Virus record (IMG/VR): IMGVR_UViG_3300024358_000009
Span: 142,327-206,326 of that record
Direction: 5' to 3' (one strand)
DNA: 64,000 nt
Within the stretch, counting starts at the first letter, position 1. Every line of letters starts with the position of its first letter. Both the position numbers and the translations under genes were made by a program. Below, piece after piece: positions 620-64,000 of the stretch. Below the pieces are notes generated by a model, which saw only the letters and a program-made list of their open reading frames with translations, had not been told where the DNA came from and ran no database searches.

Positions 620-640
620 GTATATAGAAAGGAGATGGTC

Positions 641-2300: not shown

Positions 2301-2395
2301 TTTTGGAAATATTTGCCAATGGTTGGCGAATAAGTATATGTAAGGTTGAGAGTTTTAATTTATAGGGCTGAAAGCCCAAGAAAGGTTTGGTCATC

Positions 2396-3532: not shown

Positions 3533-3542
3533 GATAACCCAA

Positions 3543-3616: not shown

Positions 3617-3619
3617 ATC

Positions 3620-3719
3620 CCCGCCTTACCTTTCGGGCGGGTTCCCCCATCCAGCTTGTTTCGTTTCCTTTCAGGCTGGATGCCGTCTAGGGGTGGCCTT
3701 GACCTCTCCATCCCTAGAC
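3620..3719 (+). ncRNA. Candidate sRNA: three hairpins with pyrimidine-rich loops in the tRNA 3' trailer
   Basis: 7-, 11- and 12-bp stems. Each has a G-U pair that forms only on the + strand. Confidence 0.45.
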
Positions 3720-3917
3720 ATTCTTATAAATATTTTTACCTCTGTATCGAATAAGATTATATAGAGGTAACCTGCTTGTCTTAGCAATGATAAGCGGGTC
3801 GCTGGGGTATTTTACCCATATTATCTAAGTCTATATAGGCGTACCTCATCCCCAATTCCCCTTATGGAAGGCCAAGTGGGCGGGTTTTCAGCGATTCCCT
3901 CACGCTCCTGTATATAC

Positions 3918-3945
3918 TTATTCGTTATAGAAGCGGAAATATTTT
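3918..3945 (-). promoter_or_regulatory. Minus-strand copy of the phage promoter motif
   Basis: Reverse complement reads AAAA-N17-CGAATAAGTATATA. Confidence 0.65.
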
Positions 3946-4008
3946 TTTAATTTTATTTAAAATATTTTTGGTTGGTGAGCGAATAAGACTATATAAAGGA
4001 GAAAGCAA

Positions 4009-4353
4009 ATGAAGACATATCCAAAAGAGAAAGTTATAGGCCAATTCAAGGTAAAAGCCGTGGATGGATGCATAGTTAAGCCTGAGAAATGGCCTTTTGG
4101 AAGGCTTTTGATGCCATCTAGCTGGGAACCGGCAGGGCATTACCTACAAAGAGGGTGGGGAGAACATGAAGGTAGCATAGCAGTTAATGTATATATAACA
4201 GGTAGAACCATAAAGTATAACTTTAAACATGGTCACCATATAGCTATCCTTTTAGAATTTGTCGGGGATTGTGAACCAAGTACCTACACTTACGGAATCC
4301 TAGAAGTAAGATTAAACAACGGAAGCATGGAGAGAATTGATGTAAGTCCTTGA
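4009..4353 (+). CDS. Hypothetical protein
   Basis: Promoter motif 3959-3986 and RBS AAGGAG. Confidence 0.75.
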   Translation: MKTYPKEKVIGQFKVKAVDGCIVKPEKWPFGRLLMPSSWEPAGHYLQRGWGEHEGSIAVNVYITGRTIKYNFKHGHHIAILLEFVGDCEPSTYTYGILEVRLNNGSMERIDVSP

Positions 4354-4637
4354 GATATAAGGGTTTAAAAAATTTTAGAATTTTTATATTATGTGCGACC
4401 CAATTATATTGGAATATGCCCATAATACCCCCTTAAACCCTAGTCCTCTCTCCTCTGTATGGTATGTACTTACATATACCTTATATATAAAGGAGTTATG
4501 TCAAATGCTTATATTAAGAGGAGTGTTAAAAAGTGGAGAAAAGTGGTGAAAAAGCCCAAAGAAAACCCCTCAAATAATACATCGAACAAAGTAAATAATT
4601 CACCCTCATAAGCGAATAAGTATATAAGGAGATAGAT

Positions 4638-7600
4638 ATGAAGGATGATTTAAAGCATAGATGTGAAGACCTATATATAGTCGAAGGGGCATCTGCTGTT
4701 TTTGACTATTGCCAGTCTATTGACCATAAAGACTATGGGGATTGTGACCAATGCCAGACTTATGTTCCTATATATAAAGATTGTTGTCTTCTTTGCGGAA
4801 CAGAATTAAAAAGAGTAAACAAAACTGTATAGATAACGAATAAGTATATAAGAGAAGTTATACATAAGGAGATTAGACATGGCTTTTACTTGGAGTGCTT
4901 CAGAGTGTGATGAGAACAATATTAAAAATGTTCATAATACAGATCAGGATAGAATAGCTTGGGCTTGTTTAGATATTGGCCTGAGTGGTATTACCCTTAA
5001 GAACTATAAAGAGTTCTACAGAAGAATGAGGCTTAGGGGCGAACTGTTCAATATCTATAAGGAGTTGACGCTAAATCACATATTTAACTGTATAGGTTTG
5101 GTCACATCTGCTGCTGATTTAAGCAAGTCTGATTTTCACAAGAAGACTATAGAGCTATTTAACTATCAGGTGGAAAGAGAAATAGCTTGTGGCCGTATCC
5201 CATAGTGTTTTTGAATTGATATAACTTGTTATTTGATAAGGAGTTATGGAAATGGTTACAAACAACACCAATACACATAGATACTTTGCCGAAGTCTTCT
5301 TCCGTTCTAAGAAGGGAAACCCCTGTGCATATCATCTGTATATGGATGGTAAAGATGAGGAGGAAGTATATGGGAATATAGTAGGGAAGGTAAAGAGACT
5401 TAAGTATTTTGACAGAGTAGATAGAGTGGACATAGTAAAAATGCAACCCCTTGATAAATAAGGACTTATATCAAATGAATAATGCACAATTCGACAATGA
5501 TATTCCCCCAATGATCTTTGAATTTAGGTTCACTTCCTACAACAAACAAGGTCAAGCTTATGAATCCAATAGGATGGTCAAGGCTTGTGGTATAGATCAT
5601 GCAGTAGAGAAATTTAACGAGGAATTTACAGATTGGGGAGAAGAAGTACCAAAGTGGGATTTAATGAACATTATGGCTATTGAAAGTAAATAAATAGCTG
5701 TTAGGGCGAATATGTAAATATAAGGATGTAGCAAACATAAGGAGGGTCAAACAATGGATGATTTCAAATATTACATTGGTGAAATTCTAGAGATTAATTG
5801 TGGTTTTGAATACGAAACAAAGTACATATTTAAAATATATGAAGATGAATCTACAGATGAACATACAGATAGAGTAGCAATGAATTGGAGGGGCGGTAGC
5901 AAGCATGATTGGGATGTAAATGAGGGCTGTTATAGATGTAGTCATACATTTATCTTTGATTCTGGATGTAAGGAAATAAGCAAAGAAGAATTCGATGTAC
6001 TATCTGAACATCTTGCCATTGTATAGAAAGGCAAATCATGGATAAGTCTAAAAAAGAACTAATACATACTGTAATTAAACAGATAGTCGATGATACAAAA
6101 CATAACTATTATGAGGGTATAACAGCATTACTTAACCATATAGATACATACAAGCTTATAGCTTTTTTACCAGAAGAAATGCATGAGAAATGGAGGGGCG
6201 ATGACTTTTAAAATTTTTAGAGAAGAACTTGTACACGAAGTATTCGACATGGTTTTAAACCATATAGATAATGATGACTATTCAGTCATATGGAAGATAT
6301 TAGATCGTATGGACATATATGAGCTAGTGGCTTTATTGCCTAAAGAACAGCGTGAGAAGTGGGATAGTTCTATTGTATAAAGGAGTAAACAATGTCTTTG
6401 AATTTAAGACAACAAGTGACATACGACATATGGAACAAAGTATTTTCAAATGTAGGTAATGAACACTACCAAACCATATGCAACATACTGGATAAACTAG
6501 ATATCTTTGACCTGTTAGGCATCTTGCCCAAAGAACATCGTAAGAAGTTTGAAGGTTATGTTATTAATTCAGATGTAATGGAGAAATAACATGGAAAGAC
6601 AAGAAAAAATCAACATTTTGATGGCCCATGACATTATGCAAATTAGAGAAGATATAGAAAATGGAGATTATGAGCTTGTTTGTTCTATTCTACAGGGAGA
6701 AGGATGGGAGCAATACAATAAGCTTACAGACTACCAAATAGATGGTGAACTTGAGGACAGATTTGTTTATGTCAATTTAAATGACAAGATTATTGATTTG
6801 GCTAATAGATTAAACGGCAAGCCTATCAAGTTAGAAACATAATACCGCCACTTATTAAAATATGGAGGTATTTTGACGAATATATAAATATAAGAAGGAG
6901 GACAGACATGAAGTTAGATATTAAAAATATGTGCGTAGTATCTGGAAAAAACAAATATCAAATTTCTTTTGATGATATAAACATCGGCGATCAAGTATAC
7001 AACCCATTATCAGATGTTCTAATTCATATAGATGAAGATGATGACATTGAATATGTAAATAATAATTATTTTAAAATCTGTTAATATTTTTTAGTAAACT
7101 GCGAATAAATATATAGGAAAGGGGATTAGCAATGAATGAAAAGCTAGAAGATTTGAAATGGTTAGATGGACGAAAGGTTTTAAACTTTGTTGGTATTTTA
7201 CCAGACGATGAGCATCAAGAATGTATTGACTGCAAGTTCACAGGACAAGTTCATGCTGAGTTTGAAGTAGAAGGATTGGAAGAAGCTGAAGTAGTTTGCC
7301 CAAAGTGTGCAAGCCTACATTACTACATTGTTTAGTACCTATACATGAAGGAAATCAATCATGAAAATCAAAGTATCGGACAGGGCGATATATGGATATA
7401 TACCAACAGAAAATCCAAATGTATTTAATAGAAAAAGCGTAGTATTTATAAAAGACCGAGGTTATTTATTCCAAGAAAATTCAGTAAAGATCATTAAACA
7501 AATATTGGATGGCATCGTATATGAAATAGAAGAATCAACACCATATGATGCTAAAACGATTATGTTGGAAAATCCAAGAAGGTATAGCAAGAAAAGGTTG

Positions 7601-8293
7601 GGCGAACTTTTTGACATTCATGTAAAAGGAAATACCAATGAAGGAAATTAAGTATATCTATGTAGATGTAACAGCTAGGGTTTGTATATCTACATACGAA
7701 GACGATAAAGAGAACTCCATCCGTGGACTTAAACCAGATTTTGTTTCTACAGTTGGTGATTATGTAGAGTGGGTAAAAGTTGAAAAAGTTAATGAATTGA
7801 AAGTTTAAGGAGCAAACATGGAAAGTAATTTGAATGAAATCGCCCAAGGTGCAATTCATGGTGATTTTTTGGCTGATGTAAGTAAAGTTGGTGAAAACTT
7901 TGTTGTCAGCATTAAACACTATAAGCATGATGAAGACCATTGCCGTGGACAAAATCAAGTAGTTGGCGAACTACATAAGGCTATTGGGGCATTAAACCTC
8001 AATAAGCTTGAGAACATCACGCATGGTGGCGGTTTTGCTTGTGTAAAATGTAAGTAATAAAAGTTTAAAAGGATAGTATCATGGCTAAAGTTTCTATCAA
8101 TGCTGAAAACGCTTCTAACGCTTTTTTTAATGTGGCTGATGTAATTGAGTCATTAAAAAGGTTTGACAATGTTTTGGAATCCCCTATTTCAGATGACGAT
8201 GATAATGGTTATTCCATCGGCGATTGTCTAGATGACATAAAAGCATTTCTTCAACAGCTAGATGAAGAATGTATATCATCTGACAAAAACTAA
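4638..8293 (+). other. Cluster of about 15 small hypothetical early-type ORFs
   Basis: Closely packed 55-110 aa ORFs with AGGAG-type RBSs. Several are preceded by the promoter motif. Confidence 0.75.
6038..6211 (+). CDS. 57-aa protein, first of a tandem paralog array (not in ORF track)
   Basis: MDKSKKEL...NYYEGITALLNHIDTYKLIAFLPEEMHEKW, similar to the ORFs at 6201 and 6392. Confidence 0.7.
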   Translation: MDKSKKELIHTVIKQIVDDTKHNYYEGITALLNHIDTYKLIAFLPEEMHEKWRGDDF

Positions 8294-8341
8294 TAATAAA
8301 ATTAGGGTCTGTAGCTCAATAGGTTAGAGCAAGCGACTCAT

Positions 8342-9092
8342 CTGAGGTTGTCTTCTTGGTTCAAATGGTGTAATATAATTACAGTATTACACTATAAGGA
8401 GACAACATGAAAAGCGATGTAAGAATCTTAAATGGTTATAGACTTATATTTTTGCCAGAACACTCAAGAGCTATGAAAAATAGCAATTGGGAAGGATATG
8501 TTTATGAACATATCGTAGTTGCTGAAGAATGTGTTGGTCGTAACTTAAAAGATGAAGAAGTTGTGCATCATTTAAATGGCAAAAGAGATGATAATAGACA
8601 TCAAAATCTATTAGTTCTCGAAAGAAGCCAACACGCTAAACTTCACGCTTGGATAGACTCAGGTGCTTCTGGTTTGGAAACTGCCAGAAAGAATCGGATG
8701 AATTCAATGAAAATGTCACATAATGAACCTAAATTTTGCAAAATTTGTTTTCGGACACTACAAGATAAACAATCAAAATTTTGTGGTATTGATTGTCAAT
8801 CTTTAGGAACTCGTATTGTTAATAGACCTGAAAAAAATCAATTAAAAGAAGATATTGAAAAAATGTCTTTTGTAAAAATTGGTAAAAAGTATGGTGTTTC
8901 AGACAATACGATAAGAAAATGGGCTAAGCAATATGGAATTATGCCATCAACATTGAGCCAAGCCATTGGTACACCAATGGAAGGTGCAGAGACTAGCGGA
9001 GAGGTAAAGCCCTCTTAATAACCGCACTAGCGTCCGATATCCTTATGGGATAATGATATAGTCCATGGAGGGTAGAAATACCCACAAACATG
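8342..9092 (+). mobile_element. Group I intron (751 nt) with homing endonuclease
   Basis: P1 CAU|CUGAG pairs with CUCAGGUG (8658-8665, U-G at the splice site). P3 8694-8700/9031-9037. P4 8703-8709/8951-8957. R element CAGAGACTAG at 8987, S element GATATAGTCC at 9055, terminal G at 9092. Confidence 0.9.
8407..9018 (+). CDS. Intron-encoded HNH homing endonuclease with C-terminal Cys motif and HTH
   Basis: YVYEHIVVAE...EVVHHLNGKRDDNRHQNL...H. HTH IGKKYGVSDNTIRKW. Confidence 0.9.
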   Translation: MKSDVRILNGYRLIFLPEHSRAMKNSNWEGYVYEHIVVAEECVGRNLKDEEVVHHLNGKRDDNRHQNLLVLERSQHAKLHAWIDSGASGLETARKNRMNSMKMSHNEPKFCKICFRTLQDKQSKFCGIDCQSLGTRIVNRPEKNQLKEDIEKMSFVKIGKKYGVSDNTIRKWAKQYGIMPSTLSQAIGTPMEGAETSGEVKPS

Positions 9093-9725
9093 AATCGCTA
9101 GGTTTTCGGTTCAAATCCGAACAGACCCATTAAATAAACATTCTTTATCAACGGAGATAAATAATAATGCCCAGAACATTCCAAGCTAAGATTGTAATAT
9201 TTGTCGAAGTTGATGTTCCTGACAATATGCCAGAATTAAATGTTGAAAGCTGGGTTAATTATGAGGCTAAACTTTTGGCAAATAAAATGTTGTGGGATGA
9301 AAAAACTAAATTTGAAATAGTTCATGTGGAATAAAAATATGACAAGAAAAGATTTCTTAGAACTGGTAGATAGATCAAGGATGACAAACAGCGAAAGAAT
9401 AAATGCTGGACTTCCTCTTGCAGAAGAAGATATTAGGCGAGTTCTAGATGAGTGTTATCCATATTTAAAGAAGTCAAAGGAATGGGAAAATGATAGAGAT
9501 GGGTAATGGCTGGACTGTTAGCTTAAAAGACAATTCGTGTTTGAATAAACTATCATATCAAGAAAAGAAAAAATGGTGGAATGATATAAAAAAAGTAACA
9601 CCAATTCAATTTTCAGTAAAGGAAAAGGCAGATACAGCGAAGATATTATTAGAGAGAAGAACGAAATTTGAGTGGATTGTTACTAACACTCTTTTTCTTG
9701 GTCACTATCACGAAAAGAGACAAAG

Positions 9726-9798
9726 GGGCGTGTAGACCAATGGCAGAGTCAAAGGACTTAAAATCCTTCAAGTATGGGTTCGACTCCCATCACGCCTA
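9726..9798 (+). tRNA. tRNA-Leu(UAA), second copy, short variable loop
   Basis: Nearly identical to 3543-3616, with a compensated acceptor stem GGGCGTG/CACGCCT. Confidence 0.92.
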
Positions 9799-12352
9799 TC
9801 CTATTAAATGAAAGGATTAATTATGGATGATTTTGTTTATGTGGTTAGACTTTCAGATCGTTACTACTTTGTGGGTTGGTGCAAAGTTGATGTTGTTAAT
9901 TTCTGGAGAGAAATAAAGAGCATTGTAAATAAATTATATTTTGAAACCTATATAGAAGCAGAGGAAGTTGTAAAGCTTTTAAAAAGTAAAACAACTTTAA
10001 GTTGGGAAGTTAAACAAGTTAATCTGGAGGTCAAGCTATGAAAATTGATGACGCTATTAAGATGTTGCAGGAAGCAAAAGCGGAAGGGAATAAAAATATT
10101 ATTTTTGCATTCTGGACAGCAGATATATTTACAAAAGTAAACGACAAGGGAGTTACTAAGAGTTATAAAGAAGGAGAAGTTTGGAAAAACTTGGTTGAGT
10201 TTATTGATAAAAATATGGATTGGGGTTATACGCACGAAGCATTACAAGAGATTATTAATGCTGTAAGAGGTGCTAAAAATGCATAAGAAACAAATTTTAG
10301 AATTTCTTGATGCAGAGACAGAGATAGAAGCTAGATCAAATATGTTTAGATATACAGAGTGCGGGGCGTTCATTGAATTCAAGGATGATCGTATTATAAT
10401 TGGCTCAATTGTTGAAGGATCGGAAAATGGAACTGAATATTTTGAATTTGAATATGGCAAATTTACTGCAAATGAATTCCTAGATGCAATACAAGAAATT
10501 GAAAGACAGGCTAGTATAATCTGGGATTGGGCAAATAAAGAAGATGAGAATGGTCTTACAAATGCCGAGAAAGGATATGATTGGCCACTACTATGATCAA
10601 AGAAGATTTTTTAAAATACCTGAATGCCAGTAATGAATACAGAGCTAGTGTTAATTTCAATTCTTATACAGAATATAAAGTATTCTTAAGATTTGATAAA
10701 AACTCTATTTGTTTACATACAGCAGATAATAAAAAATCTCATGTATTAGAATATGGTAAATTTACTAAAGAACAATTTGATTTGCTCGTAGATGAACTGG
10801 AGAAGTAATGCATACATATTATGCAATTAAACATTCAAATAAAAAACCATGCATTGTTGGTATGGTTCAAGCGTGGAGAAGGGATACAGCTAATAAAATA
10901 GCAGAGGTTTGTTTTGCAAAAAGAAACTCTGACAGAGTGTATTTATATGTACAACCAAAGGGTTTTGTAGATAAAAATACAAAAAAATATATTTGGAGTA
11001 AATTTAAAAAGGTTGCTGACGAATAAATATATATAGCAAGAAAGGAGTTTGATATGACCAGCATGGAAAACAAGAAAGATTCAAAAAACAAGAAACCAAG
11101 ATTATCCGATGAGGATATTCTTACTCAAGTTTTTATTCAATGTGGCCGTCCTAAAGACATAATCAAAACTGCTGTCGTTAATGTTTTTGATAATAGATAT
11201 AGAGTTAATGTATGGCAAAGCATTAACAATCCATTTCTGCCAAAAGCCGGAAAGATTGTAGCAAGTTTTTTTGTGGTTGTTACTGACGAACTAGAGGTGA
11301 AAGTAATTAAATAAAGGAAATACAATGATTGAATCGCATGGAATGCTTTTAAATTATTTTTGTGTTGACCCATCTAATTATAAAAACGAAGTTCAAATAA
11401 ACAACGATCTGTTTCCAGATGGCTTAACCATTAAAAAGGTTGACAATCTAACTGTTTTGTTAAAAGCAAAACACGCAATGAAAATCTTGTTTTATCCAAT
11501 TAAACTTAAAAAGTTAGAAACTGCTTGTAATAACTTAGCAAAAGAAATGAAGGAGGAATCCAATGAAATGGTTTCAAGATCATAGCAATGTTTGTGCATT
11601 AGCACGATGGCTGGCCGGACTTGGAGAGTGGGAAAATATTGGAGATATTGAACTTCCAAATGGACAAACTGTTGAGGACAATCCAGCCGATAGGCTTATT
11701 TACTTCTTTGAAAAACCTTGGAAATGGGATTCTGAATGGGAAGAATTTAAGAAATCTGGGCATTCGTAAGACGAATAATATAATATAGGAAGGAGGATAT
11801 AAAATGATTATACAAATTGATAACCAGTCTAGGCATATATTTGCTGTTGCTGCAAATTACCTTGTAGTAGACGAAGATAAGATCATTGGTGCTTTTATTA
11901 CTAAGCGTGAAGCTATTGCACAAGAAAAGGTATATAAAAATGCTAAAGATGATTGCATTGATCTTGTGTCTTATGATGCTTAATGGGTGTGGAACTGTTG
12001 AGCAATCTGTATCAACCAGCATATCTCCCTATGATTCTAGAGAGATAGAAAAAGTAAATGTGAGTTTTAGATATACTTATACTTTTCCAAAATAAGGAGA
12101 ATAAAATGAAAATGTATCTTATTAATGGTTATAAAGATAACCAAATTCGTGCCGGACTTCTTGAAAAAGAGTGGCAAAGTAAAAATGGCACTCCTCTTGT
12201 AACATTAAAAATTATTGACCATTACAATGAACATAAGACTGTTTACAGGACTTATCATAAAAATAAATTGGCGGTAATGAAAGTTCTTGAAATGGATGAC
12301 AATCTTTTATCTAAATAACTGTACTACTCATACTAGAAGGGTTGAAAATTAA

Positions 12353-12616
12353 ATGGCTAACAAAGGACAAAGCTGGAAACAAAATCGCTCTATTACTCCA
12401 GAAGAATTTGTAAAGGTATTTACCGAAAAGGATTCTTTTGAAGAAGTGGCAGAATATTTTGGCCTTAGTGTTTCTTCTGTAAAGAACAGGGCGTACTCCT
12501 TAAAAAGATCTGGCGTAAACCTAGTGACAAAAAAGAAAAATGCCAAACCATTTTTTGGAACTCAGGGATTTGATGTGGATTCGCTAAATAAAATCATTCA
12601 GAAGGCGAATAAATAA
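12353..12616 (+). CDS. Putative HTH DNA-binding protein
   Basis: SFEEVAEYFGLSVSSVKNRAYSL resembles an HTH. Confidence 0.6.
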   Translation: MANKGQSWKQNRSITPEEFVKVFTEKDSFEEVAEYFGLSVSSVKNRAYSLKRSGVNLVTKKKNAKPFFGTQGFDVDSLNKIIQKANK

Positions 12617-12722
12617 ATAGAGGAGACTAAAATGCCACTAAAGCCAACTGCCGGTGCTGACTATTTTTTAATCTTTGGTTGTATCTTAACTTTTGTTATA
12701 GGTCTTTTTAGGAGTAATAGAT

Positions 12723-12959
12723 ATGTATAGAAGGTTCTTTATTACAACTGTAGCGTCTGTTCTTACAGCTGGCTTTGCTCTTGCAAAAAAGAAGGTTAGG
12801 CAAACTGTTAGCGGTTTTGGAAAAAGCCTTTCTGAAGCTATGACTGATTGCTATAGAAATGCTAGACTTGTTTCTACTTCATATCAGACTATTACTAGAA
12901 GTTCTTCTGGTAGCGGTTCTTCTTGGACTTACACTATGGTAATCGAATATGAAGACTAA
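12723..12959 (+). CDS. Small exported protein with twin-arginine-like signal
   Basis: MYRRFFITTVASVLTAGFALA. Confidence 0.55.
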   Translation: MYRRFFITTVASVLTAGFALAKKKVRQTVSGFGKSLSEAMTDCYRNARLVSTSYQTITRSSSGSGSSWTYTMVIEYED

Positions 12960-13551
12960 TTTTGAAAAGTGGGTTTTACCTAGATCAAACTGGACAATGT
13001 ATGTTATCCATGTTTGTTCTAGGAAAATGCCAGAACAAATCTGGATTGAAAGATGCGGAAAAGACAGGAAATTAATGTTTGCACAAGGTGGTGCAGGAAA
13101 AAGAGGTGACATATTAACGGAACAGAAATTGCGGAGTATGGGCTACACACTATTAAAAAAATAGCGGTTGTAGTAGTTAATGAACACGGAGAAGTTTTTT
13201 CAAAAAAAGATAATACTCAGTTTAGCATTGACAAAAACAAGGCATTCGTATTTCATTGTTTAAATGAGGTTCATGCCGATATTGTTGTAGAAAAAACAAA
13301 GGAGCATACAGGACTTCAAAATTTGCAATGGAGGGCATATGACGAGACAGGCGAAAGCTAAAAAGACAGCAATAAAAATAGCTAAAGTTATGGCTCGACA
13401 ACTAGGAAGAAAGATAAAAAACATAAGTTTTGACGATGCTGACACTATTCGTGAAGATTATTTTTCTATTTTTGGAACAGATAGATTGACACGAAGATAT
13501 GATTTGGTAAGTATTGTAGCTTGAATTTTTAACACAAACCCAAAGGAGAGA

Positions 13552-54288: not shown

Positions 54289-55304
54289 TAATAACCTATT
54301 TAAGGTCTTCTTCAGCTGGCTCGTTTGAATGGTGTCAGCATAAATATTTTTTAACATATTGTTTAGGTTTTAAAGATGATTCTAATAAAAAAGCTGTAAA
54401 AGGAAATATAGTTCATAAAGCACTAGAGTTACTAGCTAATAAACAGCTTTGTTTGCAAACAAAGACCAAAAATTTTCGTGATGATGAATTAGATAAAGAG
54501 TTTGATACCTTGCTTATTTGTCCAGAGCAAGCTATTAAGTCAGCTTTTGAATTTTATAGCAAAAAAGAAAATGCTTTTGAGTGGACAGATAAAGATTTTG
54601 AGGAATGCGACAAATGGTTATGGGATACTTTATTATTTAAAGACGGAATGTTTTCCCCATTGAATAGAGTAATAGTTGAGCCAGAAAAATATTTTGATAT
54701 AGAGCTAGATAAACCTTGGGCTAAATACGATTTTAGACTTATGAACGGAGAAACCGTTTCTGGTAATTTAAGATTAAAAGGAACTATGGATCTTATAACC
54801 AGAATAGATTCAAAAACAATTGAATACATAGATTGGAAAACAGGAGAAAGAAAAAATTGGTCTACTGGAAAAGAAAAGGGTTATGACGATCTATTTGATG
54901 ATTTTCAACTTAGACTTTATCATTATGCTTTAAGCAAAGTCTATCCAAATGAAGAAAATATAATAGTTACAATATTTTTTGTTAAAGCTGGCGGACCATT
55001 TTCTATATGTTTTCACAAGGAAGATCTTATAGAAACAGAAGAAATGATAAGAAAGAAGTTTGAATCAATAAAAAAATGCAAAACTCCAATGAGAATTATG
55101 GATTTGGGTAGAGATAAATGGAAATGCAGTAAATTATGCAAGTTTTATAAAGACGATTTTCAAGATGGAGTATCAACTTGTAGAAAAATTCATGAGGAAA
55201 TAGTTGAGTTGGGATTAGAAAAAGTTTATACTAAATATGCTGACTTCACAGCGGTTAAACAGTATGGTAGTGGTGGCGGTAAAACTAACAGGGAATCAAC
55301 ATGA
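54285..55304 (+). CDS. PD-(D/E)XK exonuclease (RecB/Cas4-like)
   Basis: GNIVHKALE, GTMD, IDWKTG, QLRLY and a Cys cluster. Confidence 0.8.
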   Translation: MIITYLRSSSAGSFEWCQHKYFLTYCLGFKDDSNKKAVKGNIVHKALELLANKQLCLQTKTKNFRDDELDKEFDTLLICPEQAIKSAFEFYSKKENAFEWTDKDFEECDKWLWDTLLFKDGMFSPLNRVIVEPEKYFDIELDKPWAKYDFRLMNGETVSGNLRLKGTMDLITRIDSKTIEYIDWKTGERKNWSTGKEKGYDDLFDDFQLRLYHYALSKVYPNEENIIVTIFFVKAGGPFSICFHKEDLIETEEMIRKKFESIKKCKTPMRIMDLGRDKWKCSKLCKFYKDDFQDGVSTCRKIHEEIVELGLEKVYTKYADFTAVKQYGSGGGKTNREST

Positions 55305-56008
55305 GCGAAGAAAAAATTAGCAGCTTAAACGAACTTTTAAACTTATTTTCTTTTAAAGAAAAATCAGATATTCCAGAACAAAAAGAAGAAAATTCAAAAA
55401 ATATTTTGGTTTTTAAAACATCTCTGCTTGATTCTTTGGGTAAATTTCAAGGAATTTTAACAGGTGAAGATTGTCAACTTTATTTACAAGAAATACTTAT
55501 TCCAGAAAATTTATTATGGATTCCGAGAAATATTGCTGAAAAAAGTCCTGAGTACAAACAAGTAATTCCTTACTGCGTTATTACATCTGCAAATAAAACA
55601 TTTTCTTATCGAAGAAATAAAAAGGGCAATGAATCTAGATTACATAACATGAAGTCTATAGGCATTGGCGGTCATATTGAGCAATCAGATTTAGACAATG
55701 TTGATGACTTGTATAATAGTGCTATGTGGAGAGAGATAGACGAAGAAATTGCCCTAAATAAAGGTTTGGTAAAATCGAATAAAATTATAGGCATCATTAA
55801 TGATGATAGTGATGATGTTGGAAAAGTTCATTTTGGAATTGTTCATAACCTTAAGATGAAGACGACTGATTGTATGGGTCTGTTAGAAAATAAACTATCT
55901 GATGGTGGTTGGGAATTTACTGGATATTTGAAAAATGATATTGATCAATGGGAAAATTGGTCAGTATTTGTAATCAATGAATTAATGAGCGAATTAAAGT
56001 CTAAGTAA
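55301..56008 (+). CDS. NUDIX-like predicted phosphoesterase
   Basis: YKQVIPY, SIGIGGH, REIDEE and VGKVHFG. Confidence 0.75.
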   Translation: MSEEKISSLNELLNLFSFKEKSDIPEQKEENSKNILVFKTSLLDSLGKFQGILTGEDCQLYLQEILIPENLLWIPRNIAEKSPEYKQVIPYCVITSANKTFSYRRNKKGNESRLHNMKSIGIGGHIEQSDLDNVDDLYNSAMWREIDEEIALNKGLVKSNKIIGIINDDSDDVGKVHFGIVHNLKMKTTDCMGLLENKLSDGGWEFTGYLKNDIDQWENWSVFVINELMSELKSK

Positions 56009-56043
56009 TTTTTATTTATGGAAGTTTTTTTAGAAAGAATTAA

Positions 56044-57957
56044 ATGTCAAATTGGATTCCGTTGCATGTTCACTCGCAATATTCATTGCTTGATGGACTT
56101 CCTTCTGCTGAAAGAATAGCAGATAGGATATCAGAACTTGGATTAAAAGGTTGTGCATTAACAGATCATGGATCTTTATCTGGTTCTATTTCATTTTATA
56201 AAAAGTTAAAATCCAAATCTATTGATCCAATACTTGGTTGTGAATTTTATATATGTGAAAATGAACCTACAATAAAGAATGAAGATAATAAAAAACTAAG
56301 TCATTTATGTGTTCTTGCAAAACAAGATATTGGATGGAAGAACTTAGTAAAAGCTAGTTCTATTTCTAGTTCTCCAGAAAACTTTTATAGAAAACCAAGA
56401 CTTGACCTTAAAACTCTTGCGTCTATTTCAAATGGTTCCTTTATTGTTTTTTCTGGTCACCCAGGTTCTGACTTGGGAAATTGTTTATTTACAAACTTAA
56501 CAGAAGCATATAGAGCAGAAACATTTGAACACGCCAAGTCATTAATTGATCCTAATTGGGAAAAGAAAGCTACTGATCTAGCATATAAATACGCAGACTT
56601 ATTTGGAAAAGAAAACTTTTACTTAGAAATACAGTTAATAGATTCTGAAAACATACCAGCGACTAAAATAATAGCTAAAGCTTTAAGACATATAGCAAAA
56701 AAGCACGGTTTCAAAACCGTTGCTACACCAGATGCTCATTATGCAAGAAAAGAAGATGCTGTTGACCAAAGAGTTTTGTTAGCTTGTTCGATGAAAAAGA
56801 CATTAAATGATATTAGAAATCATATTCAAAACGATGAAGACTTTGGTTTTTCTGGTTTTTTTAAATCAAATAATTATCATATACCGTCTTTTGAAGAAAT
56901 TTCTAAATTAAACTCTAATGAAGAGATAGAAAATACATTTGAAATATTTAACAGGTGCAAAGATTATAGTATTTTGAAATCTCCTATGTTGCCAAAAATA
57001 ACTGGAGATAGTTCATCGTCATCAGAAATAAAAAGACTCTGTAGAGAAGGTTGGAAAAAAAGATTTTCTTTTAAAAAAGAAGACCCAAAATTTAATCAAT
57101 ATGGAGATAGAGTCACTAAAGAATTAGAAGTTATAACTTCTGCTGGCTTAGAAGACTATTTCCTAATTGTTTATGATTATTGCAATTGGGCGAGAGAACA
57201 GGGGTGGCTTATTGGCAAAGGTCGTGGATCTGGCGCTGGATGTATGGTTAGTTATTTATTGGGAATTACTGAAATAAATCCAATTGAAAACGGATTATTG
57301 TTTGAAAGATTTTATAATTCTGGTCGTAATGCTCCAGGAAGAATTAGTTTGCCAGATATTGATTGTGATTTCCCAATATCAAAAAGAGAAGAGATTATTA
57401 ACTATATTAAAAACAAATATGGTAATGATAAAGTTTCTCAAATATCTGTTTTTACAAGAATGCAAGGCCGAGGTGCTTTAAAAGATGTTTTGCGTATTCA
57501 CGCTGCTTGTAGCTTTGAAGAAAGCAATCTAATAACAAAACATATTCCAGATGAAGCTGAAATAACCGAAGAATTACAAGAAATGAGAGATGAAGGACAA
57601 GAACCTTCTATAATTAGATGGGCCTTAGAAAATTGCCAAAAAGATTTAGATCCATATTGTAAACTAAAAGATGACGGAACATTAGAAGGTCAATATGCAA
57701 AATACTTTGCCCAAGCAATAAGGATGGAAGGAACTAAAAGATCACAAAGCAAACATGCTGCTGGAATAGTAATTGCCTCTGAGAATTTACAAAATATATG
57801 CCCTATGATTTATGATAAAACATCTCATGAAAATATAGCTGGATTAGAAATGTCTGATCTTGAATCTATTGGGCTTGTTAAATTTGATATTCTTGGGGTT
57901 GCAGTTTTGGATAAAATGATGGGCGTTCAAAAACTTCTTGCTGGAGAAAGTTTATGA
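56044..57957 (+). CDS. dnaE: DNA polymerase III alpha, part 1 (PHP and catalytic palm/thumb)
   Basis: HVHSQYSLLDG, TDHG, GRGSGAG, PDIDCDF, HAAG, ending after KFDILG. No intein. Confidence 0.93.
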   Translation: MSNWIPLHVHSQYSLLDGLPSAERIADRISELGLKGCALTDHGSLSGSISFYKKLKSKSIDPILGCEFYICENEPTIKNEDNKKLSHLCVLAKQDIGWKNLVKASSISSSPENFYRKPRLDLKTLASISNGSFIVFSGHPGSDLGNCLFTNLTEAYRAETFEHAKSLIDPNWEKKATDLAYKYADLFGKENFYLEIQLIDSENIPATKIIAKALRHIAKKHGFKTVATPDAHYARKEDAVDQRVLLACSMKKTLNDIRNHIQNDEDFGFSGFFKSNNYHIPSFEEISKLNSNEEIENTFEIFNRCKDYSILKSPMLPKITGDSSSSSEIKRLCREGWKKRFSFKKEDPKFNQYGDRVTKELEVITSAGLEDYFLIVYDYCNWAREQGWLIGKGRGSGAGCMVSYLLGITEINPIENGLLFERFYNSGRNAPGRISLPDIDCDFPISKREEIINYIKNKYGNDKVSQISVFTRMQGRGALKDVLRIHAACSFEESNLITKHIPDEAEITEELQEMRDEGQEPSIIRWALENCQKDLDPYCKLKDDGTLEGQYAKYFAQAIRMEGTKRSQSKHAAGIVIASENLQNICPMIYDKTSHENIAGLEMSDLESIGLVKFDILGVAVLDKMMGVQKLLAGESL

Positions 57958-58206
57958 AACGAAAAGGCGATCTACAAGATGAACTTGTTTCTTTGCATGA
58001 AAAAATTAAAACAAAAGATGTTGTTATAAAAGAAACATTGATGTTAATGAAAGCTTTGGTTTTTAAATTAGGACGAAAAGTTAATCTTAAATCTGAATTT
58101 TTAGAAGCTGCAAAAAGCAATGAGTTTTATGTAGATTTAAAATATGATGAAGAAGGCACATTGAAACTTGAAATTAAAAAAACCTTAGATCTAGAATAGG
58201 AAGAAA

Positions 58207-58872
58207 ATGAATAATTCAACTATAGTTGTTTTTGATTTTGAAACTGGTAGTGTAAACCCAGAAACTTGTGAAGTTATACAAGTTGCAGCGATGGCTTTGC
58301 ATCCAAGAAGTTTAACTGAGCTTGGTCAATATAGCAGCTTGATTAAACCAAGGGATTTTTCAAAATTGGAAAAAGAAGCTCTTGAAATAAACAAGAAAAG
58401 CATTGAAGAATTAGAAAAGGCTCCAGATCTTTCTATTGTTTGGAAATCTTTTACATCGTTTATTAAAAAATATAATCCAAAACCAGGAAACACTTTCTTT
58501 GCTCCAATAGCAGCTGGAAAAAACATTAGGCATTTTGACTTAATTATTATTAATCGTTTAGCAAAAGAATTTGGCGATTGTGATAAAAACGGAAAACAAA
58601 ACTTATTTAATAAAAGAAGCGTTTTTGATTTAGATGATTTTATTTTTCAATGGTTTGATAATTCTAATGAACTCCGTGATCATAAAATGGATACTTTAAG
58701 AGAATTTTTCGGTCTTTCTACAGCAAATGCTCACGATGCATTAGTAGATGTTAAACAAACAGCTTTACTATTGAAAAGTTTTATTCAACTACATAGAAAA
58801 GTAGCTACGAGAGTTAACTTTAAAAACTCTTTAAATGAAAACTCTGGTACTGCAAAGGGCTTTATATCTTGA
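58207..58872 (+). CDS. DEDDh 3'-5' exonuclease (DnaQ-like)
   Basis: DFETG, N..FD and HDALVD. Confidence 0.85.
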   Translation: MNNSTIVVFDFETGSVNPETCEVIQVAAMALHPRSLTELGQYSSLIKPRDFSKLEKEALEINKKSIEELEKAPDLSIVWKSFTSFIKKYNPKPGNTFFAPIAAGKNIRHFDLIIINRLAKEFGDCDKNGKQNLFNKRSVFDLDDFIFQWFDNSNELRDHKMDTLREFFGLSTANAHDALVDVKQTALLLKSFIQLHRKVATRVNFKNSLNENSGTAKGFIS

Positions 58873-58879
58873 GGTAATA

Positions 58880-59782
58880 ATGGAAGATTTTTATAAATTT
58901 GATTGTGGTTGTAAGTGGCCAATTTTAGAACCATCTAAAAATGGAAAAATACCAAAGCTTAAAATAAATTTACACAACTTACCATATTGTGATTTAGCTT
59001 GGAAAATTTTTTCAAATGGTGATACCAAGGGCATTTTTCAATTGGAATCTCATCTTGGTAAACAATGGTCAAAGAAATTAAAACCCAAAAATATGGAGCA
59101 TTTATCTGCTCTTGGCGCACTTTTAAGGCCGGGTTGTCTTCGTGCATTAGACGAAGATGGAATTTCTATGACAGAACATTATTGCAAAAGAGTTAATGGC
59201 TTAGAAAAAGTTCCTAGTTATCATGAATCCGTTGATGAAATATTAAAACCAACTTATGGCGCTTTAGTTTTTCAAGAACAAGCTATGCAAATAGCACAAG
59301 CTGTTGCTGGATTTAACTTGCAAGAAGCTGATGTTTTGAGAAAAGCTATTGGTAAAAAAAATACCCAAGAAATGGCTAACTGCAAAAAGATGTTTATTGA
59401 CGGTGCTAAAAAAGCAAAGATTATTTCTGACGAACAAGCAGAAGAGTTATTTGGTTGGATACAAGCAAGTCAAAGATATTCATTTAATAAATGTTTGTCT
59501 CCAGATTCTGTAGTAGAAACAAAAGAAGGCTTTAAAACACTTAAAGAATTAAATATTAATGATTATGTTTTAGCTCCATCTATCAAATATAAAAAAAATA
59601 TTTTTATTAAAGTAAAAGATAAAATAAATAATGGAAAACAAGAAGTTTATGAAATAACAACATCAAGTGGCAAAAAGTTAAAATGCACATTAAATCACAA
59701 AATATTATGTTCTGATGGTAAAAAAAGAACGCTTTATGATATTTTAGAAAAAAACTATAGTATTATGTGTGACCTAGAATAA
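58880..59782 (+). CDS. dnaE: DnaE part 2 (fingers) fused to the N-half of a split intein (59492-59779)
   Basis: GIFQLES, LRPG, FQEQ, LRKAIGKK, YSFNK|CLSPDS...CTLNHK. Confidence 0.92.
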   Translation: MEDFYKFDCGCKWPILEPSKNGKIPKLKINLHNLPYCDLAWKIFSNGDTKGIFQLESHLGKQWSKKLKPKNMEHLSALGALLRPGCLRALDEDGISMTEHYCKRVNGLEKVPSYHESVDEILKPTYGALVFQEQAMQIAQAVAGFNLQEADVLRKAIGKKNTQEMANCKKMFIDGAKKAKIISDEQAEELFGWIQASQRYSFNKCLSPDSVVETKEGFKTLKELNINDYVLAPSIKYKKNIFIKVKDKINNGKQEVYEITTSSGKKLKCTLNHKILCSDGKKRTLYDILEKNYSIMCDLE

Positions 59783-59809
59783 TCGGTGTAATAAGTCATA
59801 GGTGATACT

Positions 59810-60739
59810 ATGAAAATAGAAAAGAATTTTTGGAATAAATGTTTTCTATGTAATAAAAACTTACATGAAATTAAAAAATTTTATGGAGGCTCTAATGTTT
59901 ATTTTTCTAAAGCCATGGCTCAACATATAGTTTCTCATAAAATCTCTTTAGAAGACTATTTTGAAAAAATAGTTAAAATAATAAGACCTATTTGTAAATG
60001 CGGAGAATGCAATAAAAAAACAAAAATAATTTTAAGAAATAAAAATAAAAACGGTTTTTTCTGGAAAGAATATGCATGTGGTAGATACGAAGGATCAAAA
60101 AAATGGTCTAAAGATGCAAAAATTTCTAGAATTGGTAAAAACAATCCAATGTTTGGCAAAAAACCTTGGAACTTAGGGATGAATAAGAAAAATTCAGAAT
60201 ATGGTAAAAAGATGTCTTTGTATAGGATTGGTAAAAAAACATCAAAAGAATCTAAAAACAAACAATCAATATCTGCTAAAAAAAGATTGATTCATGGTCA
60301 TACAGGAATTAAACATTCAGAGTTTTCAAAAAAATTAATGTCTATAGCTACTTTAAACAGAATTAAAAAAGGAGCTTTTAAACATACAAAAACCAAGCCT
60401 CATTTATTAATGAAAAGTATTTTACAAAAATTAAAATTAAATTTTGAAGAAGAAAAGATTATAGAATGTTGGATTTTTGATTTTTGGTTAAAAGATTATA
60501 ATTTATTTATTGAAGTAGACGGAGATTATTTTCATGTTAATCCAAAGATTTATCCAAATGGGCCAAAAACGAATACTCAAAAGATTAATTTTTATAGAGA
60601 CAAAGTAAAAAATAAGTTTTGTCTTGATAATAAACTAAAACTTATTAGATTTTGGGAAAGCGATATTTTAAATAACGAAGGCATTATAATAAAGGAAATA
60701 CAATGCAGCCTGAATCAATCGTGTCAATTAAAAAAATAG
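59810..60739 (+). mobile_element. Free-standing homing endonuclease (NUMOD3 repeats plus Vsr-like/EDxHD domain) between the intein halves
   Basis: NPMFGKKP and HSEFSKKLMS, then DF...IEVDGDYFH...RD...IRFWE. Confidence 0.85.
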
Positions 60740-61830
60740 GAATTATTGAAACATTAGATATTGAAGTTGATAATGAAGAACATATCTTTTATGCGAATGG
60801 AATTGCGGTATCAAACAGTCACAGTTCCGCCTATGGCTTTACTGGATATGATACAGCTTATTTAAAAAGTCATTTCCCAGTACAATTTTTTACGAGTTGG
60901 CTTTTTTACGCAAAAGATAAAGCTGATAGCTCTCAAGAAGTTGCCGATCTAATAGACAATGCAAAGCTTTATAATATAAATGTATATCCTCCAGATATCA
61001 GAATGTTAAAGTCAAACTTTTATACTGATGGGGAATCTATTTGGTTTGGCTTGTCCGATATAAAAGGAATAGGTACTTCACAAATAAGTAAACTTATTTC
61101 TTGCTTCAATTCTCAATCTGAAAAAATAGATAGTTGGATTAAATTTTTAATTTATTGTTCAGACTCTATTTCTTCTACATCAGTAGCAAAAGTTATTGCT
61201 GTCGGCGGTTTTGATTGGTGTGGCGAGTATAGACAAAAACTTATATCTGAATTAGAAACTTGGAATCAATTAACAGAAAAAGAAAAAGAATGGATTAAAG
61301 AAAATTGCAAAGAAACAAAAAATCTTAAAGAATGCATTTTAGCTTTATCAAAACCTAAAAAAGAAGGTGGTGGATGCAGTAATAAAAATCGTATTTCATT
61401 AACATCTGATTTATATAATATGTTAGAAAATCCTCCAACTGAATATAATGATCCAATATCTTGGAAAGTTTGGTCAGAAAGAGAAAATCTTGGCATAGCA
61501 CTATCATGTTCATTAACGGATGGAATAGAAAATCAATCTGCTAATACAACATGCAAAGAATTTTATTTTGGTAAAACTGGATTTATGGTATTGTCAGTTG
61601 AAATATTAGATGTTAAAGAAATAGTTACAAAAAATGGAAAAGATCCTGGTAGAAGAATGGCTAGATTAACTGTATCCGATTCTTCTTGTAAAATAGACAA
61701 TGCTATAATATTTCCAGATGCTTACGAAATGCATCTAGATAAAGTATTTGTAGGAAATACTGTTTTGATTCGTGTTGATCGTGATCGCAAAACAGATGCT
61801 ATGGTTTTAAAGGACATTAACCAACTTTAA
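60703..61830 (+). CDS. dnaE: Split-intein C-half (60703-60816) fused to DnaE part 3 (HhH and OB fold)
   Basis: IVSIKKIG...DIEV...HIFYANGIAVSN|SHSSAYG...YLKSHFP and GLSDIKGIG. Confidence 0.92.
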   Translation: MQPESIVSIKKIGIIETLDIEVDNEEHIFYANGIAVSNSHSSAYGFTGYDTAYLKSHFPVQFFTSWLFYAKDKADSSQEVADLIDNAKLYNINVYPPDIRMLKSNFYTDGESIWFGLSDIKGIGTSQISKLISCFNSQSEKIDSWIKFLIYCSDSISSTSVAKVIAVGGFDWCGEYRQKLISELETWNQLTEKEKEWIKENCKETKNLKECILALSKPKKEGGGCSNKNRISLTSDLYNMLENPPTEYNDPISWKVWSERENLGIALSCSLTDGIENQSANTTCKEFYFGKTGFMVLSVEILDVKEIVTKNGKDPGRRMARLTVSDSSCKIDNAIIFPDAYEMHLDKVFVGNTVLIRVDRDRKTDAMVLKDINQL

Positions 61831-61840
61831 GGAGTTTTTG

Positions 61841-62221
61841 ATGAACGAGTGTATTTTTCTTGGCAATTTTGTTCGTGATCCAAAGCTTGTGCAAACAAGT
61901 AGCGGTGAAGTAGTTGTAAACTTTACATTGGCGGTTAATCCTCCATACAAAAGAGAAAAAGGCGATAAAAAGGGAACTGCCTATATTGATTGTGAAGCTT
62001 GGGATAAAACAGCTGAATTAATTAATAAGAACTTTTCTAAAGGTTCTAGAATTCTAGTTCAAACATTTGCCAAGAGTGATTCATGGAAAGATGAAACTAC
62101 TGGCATGAAAAGAAATAGAATTAAATTTGTAGTAACTAGGTTTCATTGGCCAGCACCAACTAATAAGCACGAAAAAGAAGAAGACTCTTTCTTTCAAGAT
62201 CCAGTAGGATACCCAATCTAA
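61841..62221 (+). CDS. ssb: Single-stranded DNA-binding protein
   Basis: LGNFVRDP, FTLAVN, CEAW, KGSRI and an acidic tail. Confidence 0.88.
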   Translation: MNECIFLGNFVRDPKLVQTSSGEVVVNFTLAVNPPYKREKGDKKGTAYIDCEAWDKTAELINKNFSKGSRILVQTFAKSDSWKDETTGMKRNRIKFVVTRFHWPAPTNKHEKEEDSFFQDPVGYPI

Positions 62222-62222
62222 A

Positions 62223-63782
62223 ATGTCAAAATATAAGATTCTCCTTGTCAATGATAGCACATCTTTAAACACGGGATATTCTGTTTATGGCAAGGAGATT
62301 CTTACTCGTTTGTATAGTACAAATCAATTTGAAATAGCAGAAATATCTAGCTATACAGACAAGGTAGATGAAACTGTACCTTGGAAAATATATCCAGCTG
62401 TTCCTGCTAATATGTCAGATGAACAATTATCTGTATTTTTATCCGATCAAGAAAATGTTTTTGGTAAATATGTTTTTGAAAATGTTCTTTTAGACTTTAA
62501 ACCAAACACGGTTATTTCTTTTAGAGATCCGTGGATGGATTCTTTTATATCTGATTCTCCATTACGAGAATACTATAATTGGGTATATATGCCACCAGTT
62601 GATGGCATTGGACAAACAAAAGAGTGGATATCTTTATATTCTTGTGCCGATGCTATACTTACATATTCTATATGGGCAAAAAAACTATTATCTAATTATC
62701 CAGAAATCAATGTTATTGATATAGCATCTCCTTCAGCAGATGACTGTTTTGTTCCTTTTGATAATCCAAAAGAATTAAAGCTTGAATTAGGTTTACCAGA
62801 AGATTCTTTTGTAATTGGTTCTGTAATGAGGAACCAAAAAAGAAAACTTTTTCCAGATCTGGTTTTTGCATTTAATAGACTGTTATCTCTATTACCTATA
62901 GAGATCGCATCTAAAACATATTTATATCTACATACATCTTATCCAGACCTTGGTTGGAACATACCAAGAATGTTGATAGAGTCAGGAGTTTCAAACAGAA
63001 TATTTTTTACATATCTTTGTGAGGAATGTAATTATTTTTTCCCATCTGTATGGAAGGGTAATTGTATTTATTGTTTAAATTGTAAAAATCAGTCATGTTT
63101 TACAGCAGGAACAAAAAATGGAATCTCTAAAGAATCTATGGCAAAAATATACAATGGATTTGATTGCTTAGTTCAATATTCTATATGCGAAGGTTTTGGA
63201 ATGCCACAGGTAGAAGCTGCATATTGTGGTGTGCCAGTTTTTTGCGTTAACTACTCTGCAATGCAAGATATGCCAGAAACTATATTAGCAACACCAATAA
63301 ACTATTCTTTAAGCGTTGAAAGTGAAACACATCGTGGAATAGCTAATCCAGATAAAATAGATTTAGCAAATAAACTAAAAGATCTAATTCTTTTGCCAGA
63401 GTTCTTAAGAAGTAGAAAGCGATTTGAGATAGCATCTACAGCAAGAGATAATTACAGTTATAATAAATCCGCTAATGTTTGGATAAACACTATATCAAAG
63501 TTAAAACCAGCAAAAAATTGGAATTCGCCAAAGATAAATATAGTGGCAAAAAATTTTAATTACTCTAAATTAGAAGATAACGAATTTATTGACGCAGCAT
63601 TTGAAAACATTTTATCAGTAAAATCAAAAAAAATTGAAAAAGTAAAATTTGATTTTAAAAGAAAATTATTTAACAAATTTGAAAAGAACAGAATGAAAAC
63701 AGATAGAGAATCAATAATTGCTTTTTTAAATAAATTAAGAGAATCTATTAATCATTGGGAAGAAATGAGAGTTTCTAAATGA
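62223..63782 (+). CDS. GT4 glycosyltransferase
   Basis: TGYSVYG, RNQKRK and EGFGMPQVEA. Confidence 0.85.
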   Translation: MSKYKILLVNDSTSLNTGYSVYGKEILTRLYSTNQFEIAEISSYTDKVDETVPWKIYPAVPANMSDEQLSVFLSDQENVFGKYVFENVLLDFKPNTVISFRDPWMDSFISDSPLREYYNWVYMPPVDGIGQTKEWISLYSCADAILTYSIWAKKLLSNYPEINVIDIASPSADDCFVPFDNPKELKLELGLPEDSFVIGSVMRNQKRKLFPDLVFAFNRLLSLLPIEIASKTYLYLHTSYPDLGWNIPRMLIESGVSNRIFFTYLCEECNYFFPSVWKGNCIYCLNCKNQSCFTAGTKNGISKESMAKIYNGFDCLVQYSICEGFGMPQVEAAYCGVPVFCVNYSAMQDMPETILATPINYSLSVESETHRGIANPDKIDLANKLKDLILLPEFLRSRKRFEIASTARDNYSYNKSANVWINTISKLKPAKNWNSPKINIVAKNFNYSKLEDNEFIDAAFENILSVKSKKIEKVKFDFKRKLFNKFEKNRMKTDRESIIAFLNKLRESINHWEEMRVSK

Positions 63783-64000
63783 ATGTTCTGTATATTAGTG
63801 ATTATAGATCCGCTACTGGTTATGCAAAAGCTGCTATTGAATATATTAGAAGCCTAAATACTATTGGTATAAATACTTTTTGTAGACCATTGATTTTTGA
63901 TAAAAGAAACTTAGAAAAAATACCAGAAGATATAGAAAACATAGAAAAAAAAGAACCTAATAATATTGATGTAATTATTCAGCATACACTACCAAATCAT
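63779..64000 (+). CDS. Glycosyltransferase (partial, runs off the window)
   Basis: MNVLYI...TGYAKAA...QHTLP. Confidence 0.65.
   Translation, partial: MNVLYISDYRSATGYAKAAIEYIRSLNTIGINTFCRPLIFDKRNLEKIPEDIENIEKKEPNNIDVIIQHTLPNH

Follow-up and report, generated by a model that had tools for sequence, protein, structure and literature searches.

A phage DnaE gene with two breaks different in age and kind, and the two-subunit replicase it may encode

Can a replicative DNA polymerase whose gene lies in three pieces still give a working enzyme, and what are the breaks that separate the pieces? The question is raised by an uncultured river phage and a 64-kb stretch of its DNA (64,000 nucleotides (nt), below called the window), which forms the final part of the 206,326-bp IMG/VR virus record IMGVR_UViG_3300024358_000009. 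In the window three open reading frames (ORFs) on the same strand, parts 1 to 3, together account for the whole length of a C-family polymerase (DnaE), no portion of which is lacking. Break 1 separates part 1, the N-half, from the C-half, and break 2 interrupts the C-half itself between parts 2 and 3, where the two halves of an intein (IntN and IntC) enclose an endonuclease gene (Table 1). We consider it quite probable that this DnaE is the sole DNA polymerase of the phage, that its two breaks differ in age and in kind, and that the replicase would consist of a non-covalently associated N-half and C-half, the latter being repaired by trans-splicing. The entire replication module is present twice in the record, in syntenic copies with ~78% nt identity (record 1-58,947 compared with 149,670-206,319), the fractured DnaE locus being in one related genome (B) and its intein-free counterpart in the other (A).

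A reading made beforehand from the letters of the DNA alone (the sequence-only reading) had described a DnaE in three pieces, and alignment of these pieces to full-length proteins bears this out. They cover positions 42-614, 633-793 and 792-1052 of the profile phrog_405, and an unsplit relative of 1133 amino acids (aa), P0062, is tiled completely and colinearly at residues 3-613, 615-795 and 796-1133. PHP, palm with the Asp triad, thumb, fingers, HhH and OB are all present and in order across the pieces; the triad corresponds to the invariant family columns D440, D442 and D615, which all belong to the N-half, and C-half homologues conserve the FNKSH block. A structural model of the intein-free allele could be aligned with the Pol III alpha of Taq, E. 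coli and Mycobacterium tuberculosis (Z ~21), the alignment reaching the OB fold. What is missing from the usual definition of a DnaE is the single catalytic polypeptide, as the polymerase is encoded by two genes in the intein-free relatives and by three here. The ORF of part 2 and IntN ends at 59782 and that of IntC and part 3 spans 60703-61830. For part 2 the most likely start is 58880 (MEDFYKF, with GAGG 6 nt upstream) and not the upstream ATG at 58835, because all relatives begin at the former.

At break 1, part 1 stops 15 residues past GLVKFDILGVAVL, which aligns to residues 550-562 of E. coli alpha (segment aligned: 498-562), and ~15 residues past the KFD catalytic-Asp motif. The intein-free C-half aligns from E. 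coli alpha residue ~572-577, both by sequence and by predicted structure. As the published limits place the palm of E. coli alpha up to residue 560 and the fingers from 561 on, break 1 cuts just inside the fingers domain. A Pfam scan gave no Hint signal at either end of the break, and no Rfam intron was found at E<=1 on 55000-64000 or at the gathering score on the whole window, so the earlier claim that this break has no intein holds. An atypical split intein made of the tail of part 1 and the head of part 2 was considered as well and was rejected, as ~10 and ~25 residues are unalignable there and neither a Hint signal nor a terminal Asn/nucleophile pair is present.

To what extent break 1 is shared was analyzed by searching part 1 against 1.84 billion cluster representatives and classifying the best 150 (clusters at 50% identity) by their phmmer end coordinates. 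As many as 141 of them end where part 1 ends (median +1 residue), six continue into the fingers domain and one is instead fused to a cpYpsA domain. C-halves of ~540 aa are equally abundant, with 2032 clusters at E<=1e-10. In a FastTree phylogeny rooted on an unsplit relative with 30% identity the six unsplit forms make up two well-supported clades nested among split ones, which fits an old fission followed by two re-fusions. In all eight context loci that reach the next DnaE piece the halves share one strand and are separated by cargo that varies. Judged from these comparisons, break 1 is the normal state of a very large phage DnaE family, a clade mostly of uncultured aquatic phages; the break that the sequence-only reading had called an extra one does exist, but it is no oddity of this locus. 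Its further proposal of a heterodimeric polymerase remains the best reading of break 1, in the form of a putative non-covalent enzyme of two subunits. A description of an intein-less two-gene DnaE was not found in Creative-Commons PMC papers and bioRxiv, a weak negative given such a scope. The family also seems to attract other insertions and fusions: in P0072 the N-half is fused to a cpYpsA SLOG domain, the N-halves P0005 and P0008 carry LAGLIDADG inteins and the C-halves of L033 and L025 one or two further inteins, which makes this DnaE family a hotspot for mobile elements.

The split C-halves start with an additional head, Y-x-F-x-C-G-C-x-W-P...L-P-L-L-D-x-D...C-x-x-x-W, which is found in 114 of 120 C-half homologues, occurs in the basal clades too and is missing from all six unsplit relatives. 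In the window this CxC...C head corresponds to 58880-59000. In the AlphaFold2 model of the intein-free allele it is a small, confidently folded beta-hairpin (predicted local distance difference test (pLDDT) score 88-92) that is not covered when the model is aligned structurally with solved Pol III alpha. Because the essential tails at the break of the split Aeh1 NrdA (PMC3045599) are analogous, we infer that the head may be a docking or metal-binding element, possibly for zinc.

Between the two halves of the polymerase the window, its relatives and L034 have a small ORF followed by an exonuclease gene. The gap of L022 contains a 57-aa ORF, a 190-aa ORF and a vWA-like ORF, those of L024 and L033 contain small ORFs only, that of L025 contains UDG, a homologue of the exonuclease, a cupin and others, and that of L035 contains UDG and Macro. 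At loci with an unsplit DnaE the exonuclease gene is located upstream (L031) or 4 kb downstream (L032). Since the content of the gap varies by lineage and the exonuclease can be placed elsewhere, the exonuclease is cargo and not part of the break. The sequence-only reading was thus correct in placing a proofreader gene inside the break of this locus, but the gene is not integral to it. Among solved structures the best relative of the exonuclease is 2P1J, an exonuclease domain of PolC type, to which the DFET and H-x4-D (HDALVD) motifs align, and the protein has all motifs of a DEDDh enzyme (DxE of Exo I, Exo II, and H-x4-D of Exo III).

The first cargo gene, orf81, had been proposed to encode an assembly factor, and a dedicated role as assembly factor or clamp for the two halves survives best among the alternatives that we weighed, even if we regard it as rather unlikely. 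It would agree with the translational coupling to part 1 through the ATGA overlap, with the fact that nine of eleven contexts have a small ORF (54-95 aa) starting at the stop of part 1 or close to it, and with a dN/dS (ratio of nonsynonymous to synonymous substitution rates) of 0.28 between the two copies in the record, indicating a real gene. However, two contexts are without such an ORF, and the small ORFs abutting the part 1 stop are mutually dissimilar, unrelated ones holding the slot in other lineages, and therefore comparison lends no support to orf81 as an assembly factor. Moreover, orf81 is 57% identical in a relative with 88% identity whose polymerase is 88-92% identical, and thus evolves far faster than the polymerase. 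Recognisable relatives occur in the nearest lineages only, among them a distant 95-aa homologue in L030, and no match was obtained in Pfam, PHROG or the atlas. The AlphaFold2 model of orf81 is of low confidence (pLDDT 59.7), and a complex prediction with N-half residues 270-637, the C-half, Zn and orf81 as partner gave no answer for orf81 and is evidence neither way.

Break 2 is of a different kind. The C-half of genome A is a single 541-aa ORF reading ...RYSFNKSHSSAYG..., and relatives with 88%, 80% and ~49% identity on other contigs have an uninterrupted ...RYSFNKSHS... with no insertion. Because all of these show an empty site, the window can be said to carry an insertion, which amounts to 1,325 bp (59492-60816) and comprises exactly IntN, the endonuclease gene and IntC; within +/-15 nt of it the empty-site alleles differ from the window in just 3-5 synonymous bases. 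Parts 2 and 3 adjoin at residues 795|796 of P0062 and together equal the 541-aa intein-free allele. The expectation that splicing would restore FNKSH is confirmed insofar as the intein-free relatives read exactly FNKSH. Cys1 and a TLNH block B are present in the intein, which ends in Asn and is followed by Ser (position +1), the conserved Ser of FNKSH (...VSN|S). The closest relatives of the intein are contiguous mini-inteins of 125-139 aa at the same site in related C-halves. The one in P0172 shows 63% identity to IntN and 68% to IntC, with only ~7 residues at the point taken up by the endonuclease gene in the window, and the gene order of its locus (L030) is otherwise that of the window. Homologous IntN (45%), endonuclease (48%) and IntC (42%) are found at the same site in L031, which belongs to another DnaE lineage (46% identical). 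The nearest solved intein by sequence is gp41-1 (PDB 6QAZ, E 1e-6), with weak similarity.

The endonuclease gene starts behind an RNA hairpin (z -4.8), and none of 200 shuffles folds as well. The protein combines N-terminal Cys/His clusters and NUMOD3-like repeats with a DUF559 match of 22.8 bits (cut-off 20.6). While a search of the PDB with the single sequence found nothing, the family profile reached the homing endonuclease I-Bth0305I (3R3P, E 3.9e-5), with D224 and H242 aligned to the catalytic D196 and H213; these catalytic residues are intact, and E235, D237 and D239 are invariant. The protein is predicted to act as an endonuclease. An extra single A in the A6 runs at 59872 and 60606 of the gene occurs in one RNA-library contig each and is absent from the DNA run; it may be due to slippage or sequencing error, and either of the two would shift the frame. 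With IntN, an endonuclease behind a hairpin and IntC, break 2 is a textbook fractured gene in its layout, as the sequence-only reading had stated. It is a recent insertion of an already published kind and not new by itself.

Table 1. Features of the DnaE locus and the gene downstream of it, in window positions.
Feature	Position	Strand	Support or remark
DnaE N-half (part 1), 637 aa: PHP, palm, thumb	56044..57957	+	Pfam PHP, PF07733 palm E 3e-73
orf81, small protein, first cargo gene of break 1	57954..58199	+	ATG overlaps part 1 stop (ATGA)
DnaQ-like DEDDh 3'-5' exonuclease, 221 aa, second cargo gene of break 1	58207..58872	+	PF00929 E 1.4e-15, phrog_192
Middle piece of DnaE (extein of part 2, 204 aa) with start of fingers and CxC...C head, ends ...RYSFNK	58880..59491	+	PF17657
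IntN, 96 aa and stop (CLSPDS...TLNH...)	59492..59782 (coding 59492-59779)	+	Hint/Intein_splicing matches
RNA hairpin over ribosome-binding site (AGGTGAT) and AUG of the endonuclease	59756..59812	+	dG -19.7 kcal/mol
EDxHD/Vsr-like homing endonuclease (predicted), free-standing, 309 aa	59810..60739	+	DUF559; phrog_9084 'homing endonuclease'
IntC, 38 aa (...FYANGIAVSN), overlaps endonuclease 3' end by 37 nt	60703..60816	+	homology to P0172 intein
C-terminal piece of DnaE (extein of part 3, 337 aa) with remainder of fingers, HhH/beta-binding region, OB fold, starts SHSSAYG	60817..61830	+	HHH_6
SSB, same replication module	61838..62221	+	PF00436 E 4.6e-22

Taken as a sequence of events, our explanation would start with an ancient gene fission just past the palm/fingers border, at about residues 562-577 of E. 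coli alpha. It would have left an N-half (PHP-palm-thumb) with all catalytic Asp and a C-half (fingers-HhH-OB) with the FNKSH nucleotide-binding segment. Neither half would be able to polymerise alone, so that both would have to associate non-covalently. The C-half would have acquired its N-terminal CxC...C beta-hairpin head, and the gap between the halves would have become a slot for cargo genes, occupied here by orf81 and the DnaQ-like proofreading exonuclease. Break 2 would be recent, confined to this strain, and derive from a gp41-1-like mini-intein at FNK|S that was split by the gene of a free-standing EDxHD/Vsr-like endonuclease, so that the C-half would now be translated as two precursors. 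IntN and IntC would associate and splice to give the 541-aa C-half, and the mature enzyme would be a heterodimer of 637 aa and 541 aa, probably working with the exonuclease.

Alternatively, the polymerase gene might be decaying, its pieces being non-functional remnants while a host polymerase replicates the phage. Three pieces and a selfish element could indeed resemble such an erosion, and a clamp gene is not encoded. Yet between the two copies in the record dN/dS is 0.079 for part 1, 0.046 for part 2 and 0.083 for part 3 (0.059 for the exonuclease), rough values that suggest strong purifying selection on all DnaE pieces and the exonuclease. Also, the catalytic residues do not vary, more than 140 clusters at 50% identity retain the same split, and the 206-kb record has no gene for PolA, PolB or a beta-clamp and no other polymerase. 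Moreover, 14 riverine DNA metagenome runs contain the strain that has the fractured allele, 99% of the sampled words of 57500-61000 being found in them, and the locus is also represented in RNA libraries. We therefore regard decay as very unlikely and prefer a functional enzyme of associated halves.

Slightly less probable still, and hardly credible in our view, is that parts 1 and 2 are joined in the RNA by a group I/II intron or by trans-splicing, which would make break 1 an apparent one. Phage polymerase genes are often interrupted by ORF-carrying group I introns, but besides the missing Rfam match, the 922 nt between the pieces are nearly all coding (with the ATGA overlap and 7-nt spacers), the same gap holds 2-4 kb of unrelated genes in relatives, and split members have their own start codon, Shine-Dalgarno sequence and the conserved extra head. 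Furthermore, contigs from three metatranscriptome runs match parts of every gene of the locus and remain colinear with the genomic sequence where they cross the extein/IntN, IntC/extein and orf81/exonuclease junctions, and in these fragmentary contigs no joints were detected, so that RNA-level joining, named beforehand as a way to overturn the proposal, did not come up. An assembly chimera of two strains, the least probable explanation of all, would find a parallel in the record itself, which concatenates two related genomes, but the join of these is located at about window 6992, 49 kb from the locus, break 1 is present in both copies and in relatives, and the locus recurs in independent assemblies.

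Among these assemblies is an independent Logan contig of 3,001 nt from one of the 14 runs, which covers 58602-61602 with zero differences, and a second one covering 57803-58620 and crossing break 1. The identical three-piece arrangement is present on IMG/VR contigs from three other samples, and a misassembly of the locus is thereby excluded. Two other Logan contigs (DNA run X1) match up to window 59663, inside IntN, and 57064, respectively, and continue with 255 nt of unlike sequence, and therefore the river population has variant or recombinant alleles of the locus. In the RNA run X15 a contig of 1,924 nt is identical to window 60981-61623 and then shows 37 differences (61624-61790) toward the 3' end of part 3, which looks like a mosaic or recombinant strain boundary.

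Returning to the proposed heterodimer with a spliced C-half, some points weigh against it. Association of the subunits, splicing and polymerase activity are deduced from comparative evidence. The tree with unsplit forms inside split clades was made with FastTree and a distant outgroup, so that neither its root nor the method is strong, and dS between the two copies is ~1, which is why the dN/dS values are rough. The RNA contigs, besides being fragmentary, come from libraries possibly containing DNA. Finally, the residue before the terminal Asn of the intein is Ser (SN) and not His as in the block G HN of canonical class 1 inteins. Yet every homologous intein at the site conserves this Ser, namely four contiguous homologues and the IntC of L031, so that the Ser-Asn end characterises the family in its contiguous and split members alike and is not a lesion.

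The phage as a whole belongs to a lineage without cultured relatives. Its terminase is at most 25% identical to that of any cultured phage, and the best DnaE matches among cultured phages are 33% identical and unsplit. The replication module consists of a DnaB-type helicase, a primase, a dNMP kinase, a PD-(D/E)XK exonuclease and orf235, followed by the DnaE locus, SSB and a glycosyltransferase. The window, in which nearly all genes are on the + strand, has a GC content of ~30% with a spike to 0.43 at 2001-4000, and its first part (1-13500) has very few ORFs of at least 120 aa and contains tRNA-Leu(TAA) genes at 3543-3616 and 9726-9798. A scan of promoters and terminators gave counts not above those in shuffles. 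Outside the window, record 70,000-134,000 is a structural module on the minus strand with giant ORFs of 3976, 2647 and 2250 aa and many internal repeats at ~108-121 kb, and most large structural ORFs of the record had no match in a PHROG search. The record appears to be made of a complete genome A of ~149.3 kb and the first 57 kb of the related syntenic genome B. Both are joined at about window 6992-7130 (record 149,318-149,457), where record 1-140 recurs at 97% identity. A 221-kb IMG/VR contig represents the same record with 15 kb more of B, the extra part being syntenic to A 58,951-73,865. Probably the concatenation is an assembly joining of two co-occurring strains, but alternatively it may be a real heterodimeric molecule.

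Fractured genes, in which the halves of a split intein surround a free-standing endonuclease, were described by Dassa et al. 2009 (PMC2677866), who listed three DnaE loci and also reported a hairpin upstream of the endonucleases. By this published description the window is alike in the IntN ending the upstream ORF, the Vsr-like endonuclease ORF of ~300 aa, the IntC starting the downstream ORF with overlapping frames, the hairpin over the endonuclease start, the origin from an aquatic metagenome and DnaE as host. It differs in that the host gene is additionally a two-gene polymerase and in that the empty site, the stage with an unsplit intein and a second host lineage can all be compared. The gp41-1 split intein, itself from a fractured gene, is likewise a mini-intein of ~130 aa with the same split loop, Ser +1 and Cys1, but it resides in another host protein and ends in His-Asn instead of Ser-Asn. 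The cyanobacterial split DnaE intein (Ssp/Npu) shares the host protein and the conserved FNKSH segment, but has the native exteins AEY|CFNK (PMC3759424), the site FNK|S of the window being 4 residues downstream of Y|CFNK and its +1 residue Ser and not Cys; furthermore, its halves are at distant loci, whereas those of the window are adjacent with the endonuclease between them. I-Bth0305I, the prototype EDxHD homing endonuclease (PMC3239194), likewise combines a C-terminal nuclease of Vsr fold, its catalytic Asp and His conserved, with an N-terminal region that binds DNA and consists of several modules. In contrast to the predicted endonuclease of the window, which is free-standing inside an intein, it is encoded by an intron in recA.

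What comes closest to break 1 among published cases was described by Iyer et al. 2021 (PMC7824862): group 2.2 jumbo phages have a split minimal Pol III alpha whose catalytic module is likewise present as two stand-alone proteins. That form, however, is a minimal core without PHP, HhH and OB; its cut lies inside the nucleotidyltransferase module, its two genes are far apart and a PolB accompanies it, whereas the DnaE described here is full-size, split after the palm, encoded by adjacent genes and the only polymerase. In phage Aeh1, mobE splits NrdA-a from NrdA-b and these reassemble non-covalently, the tails at the break being required for activity (Crona et al., PMC3045599). This is also an essential replication-related enzyme in two adjacent genes with unique extra tails at the break, but here it is a C-family polymerase that is split, its gap has no endonuclease, and the split is ancient and found across the family rather than in one phage. 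Weighing these precedents, we lean, with a little more confidence than doubt, towards a wider statement. Break 1 would mark a large and hitherto undescribed family of C-family replicases that need both subunits, occurring in aquatic phages and held together by a Cys3 head on the C-half that is specific to split members and possibly zinc-binding. Cargo genes such as those for exonuclease, UDG, Macro and cupin would repeatedly land in the gap, and the empty, contiguous and fractured stages of an intein would be found in one gene.

In this case a bacterial-type replicative polymerase would be workable as two polypeptides cut past the palm/fingers border, as the rule in a large phage clade and not as an accident, and break 1 would represent a natural design for splitting C-family polymerases. 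The CxC...C head would be a testable docking element, and the family might serve as a clean system for studying how the fission of an essential gene is tolerated. The locus also supplies a new gp41-1-like split intein with Ser +1 and an unusual Ser-Asn C-terminus. As unsplit and empty-site alleles are available, it could be a useful test of the published model in which invasion by an endonuclease creates split inteins.

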